Shown piece by piece: positions 36,001 to 37,135 of a DNA stretch of 64,000 nucleotides. The translations under genes and the position numbers were made by a program. Position 1 is the first letter of the stretch. The number at the start of each line of letters is the position of its first letter. The DNA is from Orbicella franksi (lineage: Eukaryota), in assembly GCA_964199315.1 (NCBI GenBank), contig OZ116707.1:3100001-3164000 (forward strand), read 5' to 3'. The notes beneath the pieces were generated by a model that was not told the origin of the DNA, made no database searches, and was given only the letters and a program-made list of their open reading frames with translations.

Positions 36001-37135
36001 GATGATTACAGTTCCTGAAGACTTTGAAAGGGATTCAGGGGCACCAACTGTGGCAAGTGTAGGAGACCAGGCTGCAGCTGAAACTTTATTCTTGCTCATC
36101 TTCTTTCCACGGCAAACTTTTGCAAAATGGCCCTTCTTCTGACAATTAGAGCAAACTGCATCACGGGCAGGACATTTTGAACGAGGATGGTTGCTGTTTC
36201 CACAGAAGAAACAGGTAGTCGCTTGAGGTGAGCCATTTGATCCTACCGCAGCTAGCGTGCTGGGATCTATCTGTTCCTGATGCACCGTAGTGGTGGGTGG
36301 AATGGCTGCATTGACAGATGAAGGAGGACCAGAGTAGGACCCGGAATTACGCATAGCCAATTCCAGAGAACGAGCTTGATCAAATATGGCCTTCAAATCT
36401 AGCGTATTATTCTCCAGTAACCTCTGGCAGATTGAAGGTGACCGTAAACCAGTGATAAAAGCGTCACGGATGCTTTCTTCGCAATATTTAGAAGCAGTGA
36501 CACTTTGGAAGTTGCAATCCCTGGTAAGTGTTTTCAGAGCTTGGAGGAATTCATCCAACGTTTCGTGAGGTTGCTGGCACCTCGTGGCAAGGATATGGCG
36601 GGCAAAGATTTCATTCCGAGGTTTCACAAAAAGAGCTTGTAATATTTCTACGGCTGCCTCATAGTCAGTGCACTCCCCGATGTGTTGAAAGATTGAGGGA
36701 GAAACATAATTCGCCAGTACCGAGAGCTTGTCGAGGTCTCTTTGTGGTAGGACAGCCAAAAAGTTATCGAAGGTTCGTTTCCAATGAAGCCATTCTTTCG
36801 AAGCTTCGCCACTGCTAGGGTCTGTTTCCAGGCGCTCCGGACGGAGTACTTTCTCCATCGAGATTGGTGATTAAATTGTTGTAAATGAGAAAAGACGATT
36901 GCCTGCAGAAATACTAGGCTTTAATCACCAAATCTCTGTCCTTACAAAACATGGCAGCCAACTGTAACCACAAGCATTGCAGGCTCGCACAAGAAAGCTG
37001 AACATACTACATGTATGACACAATGAATTATAATGTAACGCAAAAACTCGCAGTGTTCAAGTCGTGCAAAACTCGCAGTGTTCAAGTGTCTAGAGGGCCT
37101 TCAAGAGGGCCTTTTGCAATGTCATTTATACCACA
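33017..37135 (-). mobile_element. Full-length Ty3/Gypsy LTR retrotransposon
   Basis: 259-bp LTRs at 33017-33275 and 36877-37135 (TG..CA, 8 mismatches by eye); 5-bp TSD CTCAA (33012-33016, 37136-37140); PPT AAAGGACAGGGTGAA (33276-33290); no TGG-type PBS. Confidence 0.97.
33289..36858 (-). CDS. Gypsy Gag-Pol, 1189 aa, single ORF (Gag with two CCHC, protease, RT, RNase H, integrase)
   Basis: CFFCGNSNHPRSKC and CSNCQKKGHFAKVC; LFDSG; IDLRSAYHQ..PFGVTNG..YLDN; ETDAS..TDQKS; HEALCHPG..CPIC; DFKGP..SDRG..GQAER. Domain order PR-RT-RH-IN. Confidence 0.95.
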   Translation of the reverse strand: MEKVLRPERLETDPSSGEASKEWLHWKRTFDNFLAVLPQRDLDKLSVLANYVSPSIFQHIGECTDYEAAVEILQALFVKPRNEIFARHILATRCQQPHETLDEFLQALKTLTRDCNFQSVTASKYCEESIRDAFITGLRSPSICQRLLENNTLDLKAIFDQARSLELAMRNSGSYSGPPSSVNAAIPPTTTVHQEQIDPSTLAAVGSNGSPQATTCFFCGNSNHPRSKCPARDAVCSNCQKKGHFAKVCRGKKMSKNKVSAAAWSPTLATVGAPESLSKSSGTVIIQGLEVKALFDSGTTESFIHPRLVERVALTVHPSSGTVSMATSASHTVSITGTCVADLSYQGRKYADYKLSVLPGLCADLILGLDFQSQHSSVTSHYGGSEPPLPICGFSKLNIDPPEPFANLTADCHPIASKSRRYSHEDSAFIDEEVKRLLKEGIVEPNLSPWRAQVVVTKDENHRKRLVIDYSQINRFTLLDAFPLPRISDMVNKMAQYRVFSTIDLRSAYHQVPLKKEDKPYTAFEAQGNLYQFTRLPFGVTNGVACFQREMMKFVDENDLEASFPYLDNVTICGKDQEDHDTNMEHFLEAAKRKNLCYNTEKCIFSTRRLPVFRYIIKEGTIRPDPDRLQPLCELPVPHDSKSMSRCLGLFSYYSQWIPRFSDRIKPIASCRSFPLPPPAVEAFESLKKTIEEAVVTTIDETIPFEVETDASEVALAATLNQNGKPVAFFSRTLQGSELKHASIEKEAQAIIEAVRHWRHFLTGRHFILKTDQKSVSYMFDKQHSGKIKNEKFLRWRLKLSCFSFDIVYRPGRDNVPADTLSRTTCAMATEDSLFKLHEALCHPGITRLNHFVQTKNLPYSLDEIKKMTSRCPICCECKPQYHRPEKVPLIKATQPFERINIDFKGPLPTNNGNKYFLMVVDEYSRLPFVFPCPDVSTNTVIKCLTSLFSLVGMPAHVHSDRGASFKSRELREFLSSKGVASSRTTSYNPAGNGQAERCNGVIWKAVTMSLKSKNLPFKNWQDVLPDVLHSVRSLLCTATNETPHERFFGFSRRSSAGASIPTWLATPGPVYIKRQVRTSKMDPLVDEVELLQANPHYAHVRYPDGRETTVATKHLAPKGHMEVVAAQPAPECIPEEAENLPLDTHVSVTPDAEPSSVPEPELELTPVLNSEPVRRSQRVRRPVVRLNL

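Follow-up and report, generated by a model that had tools for sequence, protein, structure and literature searches.

Self-primed reverse transcription has, to our knowledge, been shown by experiment only for the Tf1-type elements of fission yeast, and it has been predicted mainly for chromovirus kin and for one plant copia lineage. In Tf1, the primer is an 11-nucleotide (nt) complement, RNase H cuts between bases 11 and 12, and a nearby stem-loop is required (PMC7175516, PMC4600332). For prediction, a self-primer is expected to match a site of at least 10 nt which lies 0-5 nt after the 5' long terminal repeat (LTR) and is complementary to the LTR (PMC6317226), and such primers have been predicted in the Tf1/sushi group of fungi and vertebrates, in the Tcn1 clade of fungi and mosses, and in the TAR lineage of plant Ty1/copia (PMC6317226, PMC6934838). 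The element described here is a complete Ty3/Gypsy LTR retrotransposon of 4.1 kb, which lies on the minus strand at positions 33017-37135 of a 64,000-nt stretch from the coral Orbicella franksi (assembly GCA_964199315.1, contig OZ116707.1, positions 3,100,001-3,164,000 of the forward strand; genome of 497 Mb); this whole stretch is called the window, and its coordinates are used unless another contig or copy is named.

An earlier note on this DNA had proposed that the element primes itself independently of tRNA. The covariation among relatives, the location of the binding site at the LTR end and a primer end that should read ...AAA, not CCA, support this proposal, and the probability that the family starts reverse transcription without a tRNA, by self-priming of the Tf1 type, is put at about three in four.

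The putative binding site and its partner in the LTR

The LTR boundaries of the window element are fixed, because a 5-bp duplication, TTGAG, flanks both LTRs, and the two repeats (36877-37135 and 33017-33275) differ at 8 of 259 positions. Read on the minus strand, ...ACAACA closes the 5' LTR and is followed by an A (36876), the stretch TTTAATCACCAATCTC (36875 to 36860), a G, and the ATG at 36858; no TGG occurs between the LTR end and this ATG. The tract GAGATTTGGTGATTAAA inside the LTR (36936 to 36920) pairs with 36875 to 36860 at 16 of 17 positions, with one bulged T, and its contiguous perfect part comprises 12 pairs (tract 36931 to 36920 with site 36875 to 36864). This tract ends 43 nt ahead of the LTR end, and its last six bases are ATTAAA. 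The copy of the tract in the 3' LTR (33076 to 33060) has a T>C change in the sense strand, seen as A>G at 33064 in the plus strand, by which ATTAAA becomes ACTAAA and one base pair is lost. The lack of a TGG, the 16-nt complementarity with a bulge and the A>G change had all been described in the earlier note, and each of them is borne out by the sequence. When the leader RNA of the window copy is folded alone, the long-range helix is returned together with a small hairpin after the tract.

In its own genome, the family has about 12 complete 5' ends and roughly 20 LTRs besides. Across about 30 of these LTR copies the tract shows essentially no variation, while the twelfth position of the site is G in most copies and A in the window copy, so that the majority arrangement is an 11-bp perfect core plus a G-U pair. 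The pairing core conserved in this genome's family thus comprises 11-12 nt, not 16.

A second LTR subfamily in the same genome (L032-L038 and L040-L045, e.g., C4:18948399-18948670), which is about 85% identical, carries a G>A change inside the tract. Only solo or 3' LTRs of this subfamily were met and no 5' end was found in the genome; its 5' end, if existing, is expected to have the corresponding C>T in the binding site. Moreover, two places on contig C5 (29348113-29348131 and 29378289-29378307) read as a candidate tract with the start of a hairpin, and both have a C at the twelfth tract position, making them exactly complementary to the majority site (...CCAG). They may represent an older LTR variant, in which case compensation would have proceeded stepwise, from C-G through U-G to U-A.

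Pairing and covariation among relatives

A protein word search returned more than 500 relatives of about 1150-1250 aa, and the best 120 of them are 50-93% identical and belong to corals, a sea anemone, a jellyfish, a tunicate, Trichuris and an isopod; the annotation of the closest public relative (a 93% cluster) names the coral Porites harrisoni. The DNA of 11 relatives with 52-74% protein identity, from corals, an anemone, a crustacean and a whipworm, was compared with the window copy, which gives 12 members, and the LTRs of these relatives were located via self-comparison and target duplications.

All 12 members share one layout, in which the LTR ends in CA, one A follows, and the complement of a tract of the element's own LTR comes next, the tract lying 38-56 nt from the end of the same LTR. 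The binding site differs from element to element, and each of the 12 different sites matches its own LTR. Perfect cognate pairing extends over 12, 12, 12, 13, 13, 13, 14, 14, 15, 16 and 16 nt in 11 members, and the degenerate Trichuris copy is paired at 15 of 16 positions, whereas non-cognate combinations of site and LTR reach at most 10 nt. Measured against the published prediction rule, the complementarity is perfect and begins at offset 1 in 11 of the 12 members. The Trichuris copy (L078), with its one mismatch in the pairing, also has a 1.5-kb internal duplication (4609-6156 versus 6317-7866). Relative L072 is rearranged, and its 5' LTR (1420-1478 versus 5395-5453) lacks anything upstream of the tract's last bases; one element with a rearranged 5' LTR keeps the tract only in the 3' LTR.

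In the 10 members that were tabulated, the 14 nt next to the LTR contain no TGG. The distance from LTR to ATG is 16-28 nt in 10 of the 11 members with an open reading frame start on record, and 74 nt for the called frame of the Armadillidium copy. A TGG in the context of the start codon (ATGGA...) was considered as a binding site and rejected, as it stands at this same variable distance past the LTR and is explained by the conserved N-terminus. As a control, a 27%-identical Gypsy element of the same genome (L080, G000:C8:20015000-20023000; LTRs 2234-2407 and 6763-6936, target-site duplication TTACC) was read as CA, T, and then a TGG-type site 1 nt after the LTR, and the method therefore recognises ordinary sites. 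This control has no LTR complement of its binding site, which we take to resemble the 3' end of tRNA-Ser.

Covariation was measured in an alignment of nine members over 12 core pairs. These pairs are 100% paired in the nine members, and two-sided changes are found at 10 of them. The earlier note had put forward compensatory covariation in relatives as a check, and its outcome is favourable: the sequence is altered and the pairing is kept. None of 500 shuffles reached the observed score on any of five covariation measures, and sliding the partner by 1-3 columns reduced pairing to 31-48%, versus 90% in the true register. In addition, RNAalifold returned the same helix from the alignment alone, with compensation at 11 of 13 pairs. 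G-U pairs were absent from all 108 core cells, compared with 4 of 36 cells in the neighbouring hairpin (Fisher p = 0.003; nine aligned members). The strength of the pairing evidence lies in this covariation among relatives and not in the window copy's own fold.

The self-complementarity exceeds chance by far. Short AT-rich sequences do pair readily, and shuffled LTRs occasionally match over 9-13 nt, but a fortuitous match, or an inherited inverted repeat without function, is refuted by 12 of 12 elements in the same register, by compensation at 10 of 12 pairs and by the outcome of the 500 shuffles, which leaves such an origin with practically no probability.

Proposed course of priming and competing explanations

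The 3' edge of U5, the unique 5' region of the LTR, is by definition the start point of the minus strand, and the primer must therefore anneal right after the LTR. The first paired bases of the site are TTT (TCT in one member), which are incapable of pairing with CCA; the 3' end of the primer should therefore read ...AAA, and the CCA end of a tRNA is excluded. Moreover, a conserved host RNA could not track 12 different sites. In the sequences compared, the tract of the own LTR is the sole sequence that tracks these differing sites.

If the family primes itself in this manner, transcription would start at or just upstream of the tract, which for the window copy is predicted near 36930-36936 (minus strand). 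Cap and cut would lie as far apart as the perfect pairing is long, and with 11-12 nt here the start would fall near 36930-36931, compared with 36931-36940 in the earlier note. The RNA would then fold back with its 5' end onto the site after the LTR, the element's RNase H would cut between 36920 and 36919, past the tract's final A, and the reverse transcriptase (RT) would extend the freed 3' end across the spacer A, U5 and the hairpin to give a strong-stop cDNA some 45 nt long. As the effective repeat region (R), the hairpin would guide the first transfer to the 3' end of the RNA, where the tract would be unpaired and act as the poly(A) signal; the signal would thus be paired and near the cap at the 5' end and free in the 3' LTR. 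Finally, plus-strand synthesis would copy the attached RNA primer, and the site would be rewritten from the tract in each cycle, which would explain both strictly Watson-Crick pairing and ready co-variation; the strict Watson-Crick core described above fits such rewriting.

The surroundings of the tract are in keeping with several of these roles. The last six bases of the tract are ATTAAA, AATAAA or AGTAAA in 9 of the 12 members, which lends support to the earlier description of ATTAAA as a poly(A)-like signal, while the remaining three end in ATAAAA, in GTTAAA or, in one case, in nothing signal-like. The hexamer inside the tract accounts for the conserved ...TAAA end and for a second, compatible role of the helix. 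All 12 members have, from the first base past the tract, a hairpin of 3-6 bp, (G/A)CC...GG(C/U), including G-U and A-U variants; it resembles the U5 inverted-repeat (U5-IR) stem-loop and is probably part of R for the first strand transfer. Past the hairpin, the LTR continues as a U- or GU-rich sequence across members, and in the window copy the stretch 36877-36900 is the probable U5 together with the poly(A) downstream element. In the unique 3' region (U3) of the LTR, upstream of the tract, a GCCATGTTT box is found in the window copy, L067, L068, L069 and L075, and as GCCATTTTT in L079; this box, which presumably resembles a YY1-type initiator site, may be a candidate promoter or initiator element. 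An Rfam search gave nothing relevant.

The poly(A) hexamer also suits an explanation in which the helix merely hides the poly(A) signal of the 5' leader, the partner outside the LTR leaves the 3' signal open, and another primer acts. Retroviruses are known to occlude a 5' poly(A) signal through structure, and here a partner strand exists for the 5' copy only, beside the hexamers of nine members. However, signal hiding names no primer, and in 10 of 11 members a second site would find no space in the 16-28 nt ahead of the ATG. It needs neither the 1-nt offset seen in 12 of 12 members nor Watson-Crick pairing free of G-U, and relative L074 keeps a 16-nt pairing without a poly(A)-like hexamer, so that hiding in place of priming is unlikely. 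The two functions are compatible, and signal hiding rivals the priming claim only.

Another explanation would have the tract prime in trans, with a second packaged RNA, a short LTR transcript or a 3'-end fragment annealing to another genome. Priming in cis and in trans are inseparable from sequence, and the tract is also located near the 3' end of the RNA, upstream of the poly(A) site. On the other side, the 40-57-nt loop with a conserved hairpin beside the helix resembles the structure that Tf1 forms in cis, and no observation requires priming in trans, which is regarded as quite improbable.

Several points weigh against self-priming. The fold of the window copy by itself is only modest, with a z-score of -1.94. 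The position of the tract at the 5' end of the RNA, which is the defining feature of Tf1, is predicted from DNA sequence, and no promoter element was found at a fixed distance from the tract among the members: the GCCATGTTT box stands 9-35 nt upstream of it, and one relative alone (L079) shows a TATA box, some 32 nt upstream. The same helix would hide the 5' poly(A) signal, and part of the covariation could serve that function. As well, the sample of host tRNAs consists of three tRNA-Thr only, in 276 kb of own-genome sequence, with complementarity to the site of at most 6 nt. Lastly, a 14-mer that matches the complement of the majority site recurs six times, always in the same orientation, in a cluster at C4:30773066-30798721 with spacings of 0.7-1.5 kb.

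The last two points bear on a host RNA as the primer, such as a tRNA fragment or a small RNA, for example one that bears the C4 14-mer, with the LTR match being incidental. The clustered copies outside the element speak for it, and half-tRNA priming is known in copia-type elements (PMC6317226). The 14-mer was found at 26 genomic places, versus 5 for the reversed control, and these consist of 12 element 5' ends, 8 singletons and the 6 on contig C4. The 8 singletons are close to the reversed-control number, the flanks of the C4 copies do not match the element, with which at most about a 14-mer is shared, and the simplest reading of the cluster is a chance word in a repeated unit, which would be unremarkable. 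Moreover, 12 different sites each match their own LTR, which conserved small RNAs could not follow, and the 3' end of the primer would have to be ...AAA and not CCA. A host primer is thus held to be very unlikely.

Structure of the element and comparison with known systems

The features of the element are collected in Table 1. The element has the characters of Ty3/Gypsy (Metaviridae), namely the Pfam order of protease, RT, RNase H and integrase, LTR ends of TG...CA, and a 5-bp duplication. The purine tract of relatives abuts the 3' LTR as ...GGGGTGAA or GGGAGAA, with endings GGTGAA or GGAGAA. A tandem duplication of about 24 nt occurs in U3 at 37041-37091, and several genomic LTR copies align with a gap there, hence the copy number of this unit varies within the family. 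Elsewhere in the window, three tRNA-Thr-like genes are located at 2047-2669 in a tandem-plus-inverted arrangement, and none of them shows complementarity to the binding site.

Table 1. Positions of the element and its parts in the 64,000-nt window
Feature	Position	Strand	Evidence or remark
Target-site duplication, upstream copy TTGAG	37136-37140	minus	Identical 5-mer outside both LTRs
5' LTR, 259 nt, TG...CA	36877-37135	minus	Direct repeat of 33017-33275
GCCATGTTT box in U3	36947-36956	minus	Also in cnidarian relatives
Proposed self-primer tract GAGATTTGGTGATTAAA	36920-36936	minus	Perfect 12-nt core 36920-36931, continuing to 36936 past a 1-nt bulge
Small hairpin GCCU-loop-AGGC	36901-36919	minus	Directly 3' of the tract; present in the predicted fold
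U-rich stretch up to the LTR end, closing in CA	36877-36900	minus	Sequence; U/GU-rich likewise in relatives
Lone unpaired A between the CA of the LTR and the binding site	36876	minus	Kept in 12/12 relatives
Putative primer-binding site TTTAATCACCAATCTC	36860-36875 (core 36864-36875)	minus	Complement of own LTR tract
gag-pol open reading frame, single, open, 1189 aa	33289-36858	minus	gag with CCHC knuckle, aspartic protease, RT, RNase H, integrase
Polypurine tract ...GGACAGGGTGAA adjoining the 3' LTR	33276-33290	minus	Sequence; same position in relatives
3' LTR	33017-33275	minus	Tract copy 33060-33076 with T>C at 33064
Target-site duplication, downstream copy TTGAG	33012-33016	minus	Identical to the upstream copy

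Among the relatives, the anemone copy L067 (Actinostola contig; 1-1301 and 5267-5904) is inserted into an array of a 53-bp satellite, and this insertion is very recent, because its LTRs are 100% identical. Several family members are filed in public metagenome bins (P0012, JGI/ENA entries) under the bacterial labels 'DDE-type integrase/transposase' or 'InsO family', and these entries are likely mis-binned eukaryotic DNA. Public contigs of 3.6-4.4 kb were considered as a source of transcript ends and rejected, since L075, a DNA assembly, shows a single collapsed LTR, and L076 and L077 are broken within the LTR.

For RT-RNase H, the nearest solved structure is Ty3 RT (E = 4e-50), a comparison bounded by Ty3 being the only Gypsy RT in the PDB. 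The integrase is nearest to that of foamy virus (E = 1.5e-23, 87 bits), and Ty3 integrase reaches only 6e-8 and 36 bits. The earlier note had described a Gypsy element without a chromodomain, and indeed no Chromo match was found in the last 203 aa of the window gag-pol at E values up to 10, nor does a chromodomain appear in the precomputed Pfam domain lists of the 120 best relatives. A C-terminal chromodomain on the integrase, by which membership in Tf1/sushi was tested, is thus absent; the integrase appears to lean to retroviral integrases, and on the chromodomain the family is not assignable to Tf1/sushi.

As a candidate placement, the Mag lineage leads on sequence features. Elements of this lineage (A, B and C clades, SURL, K02A2.6-like) are compact and invertebrate-wide, with a single gag-pol frame, one zinc knuckle and short LTRs, like the coral family. 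The nearest named protein-atlas clusters are 'K02A2.6-like', although these names are automatic, and the LTR end motifs and lengths of the coral family fit those given for Mag in PMC3601003. In mosquitoes, Mag-like elements bear sites for tRNA-Leu or tRNA-Ser (PMC3286476), in contrast to the self-complementary site of the coral family.

The present analysis finds a self-priming signature with unusually clean covariation in a large animal Gypsy family that lacks a chromodomain, in which the primer would double as the poly(A) signal. No report of self-priming in chromodomain-less invertebrate Gypsy elements was met in the full-text literature searched, which covers few subscription journals. If self-priming is true, the range of tRNA-independent priming would widen, and the family would offer a compact natural model with a 17-nt leader and one tract that unites primer and poly(A) signal; such elements would be mis-scored as defective by annotation pipelines that demand a tRNA site. 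Elements primed by tRNA are described as vulnerable to 3' tRNA fragments aimed at the binding site (PMC7472051), and a self-primer that drifts along with its site would escape this defence. A wider reading is tentative and rather doubtful: a widespread chromodomain-less animal Gypsy lineage of corals, anemones, jellyfish, tunicates, crustaceans and nematodes might have evolved self-priming independently of the Tf1/sushi chromoviruses, one tract of 12-16 nt might act as 5' primer, as 3' poly(A) signal and as its own 5' silencer, and primer and site might drift together, free of host tRNAs and of defences by tRNA fragments.

Compared with known systems, the GalEa copia elements of fungi likewise lack a tRNA site and show conserved pairing where the binding site would be, the Conserved Hairpin Site; however, both arms lie downstream of the LTR with no LTR complement in GalEa, whereas one arm is inside the LTR in the coral family (PMC5445492). 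The likeness is greater to Tf1 and Tf2 of Schizosaccharomyces pombe and Tj1 of S. japonicus, for which self-priming was experimentally shown or inferred: the coral family also has no tRNA site, an LTR-derived stretch complementary to the site after the LTR, and a U5-IR-like hairpin nearby. The pairing lengths are similar, with 11 nt in Tf1, 11-12 nt in the core of the coral family and 12-16 nt in its relatives. Unlike these fungal chromoviruses, which carry a chromodomain on the integrase, the coral family has none; its putative primer tract carries a poly(A) hexamer, and a single A always stands between LTR and site, which also sets it apart from the Tf1 type. With the predicted self-primers of Tf1/sushi, Tcn1 and TAR, it shares the same bioinformatic signature in other lineages and hosts. 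In retroviruses, the tRNA primer anneals 1-2 nt after U5, and plus-strand synthesis copies the primer, so that the site follows the primer. Here the primer would be the element's own RNA, and primer and site can thus drift together, as the covariation among relatives shows.

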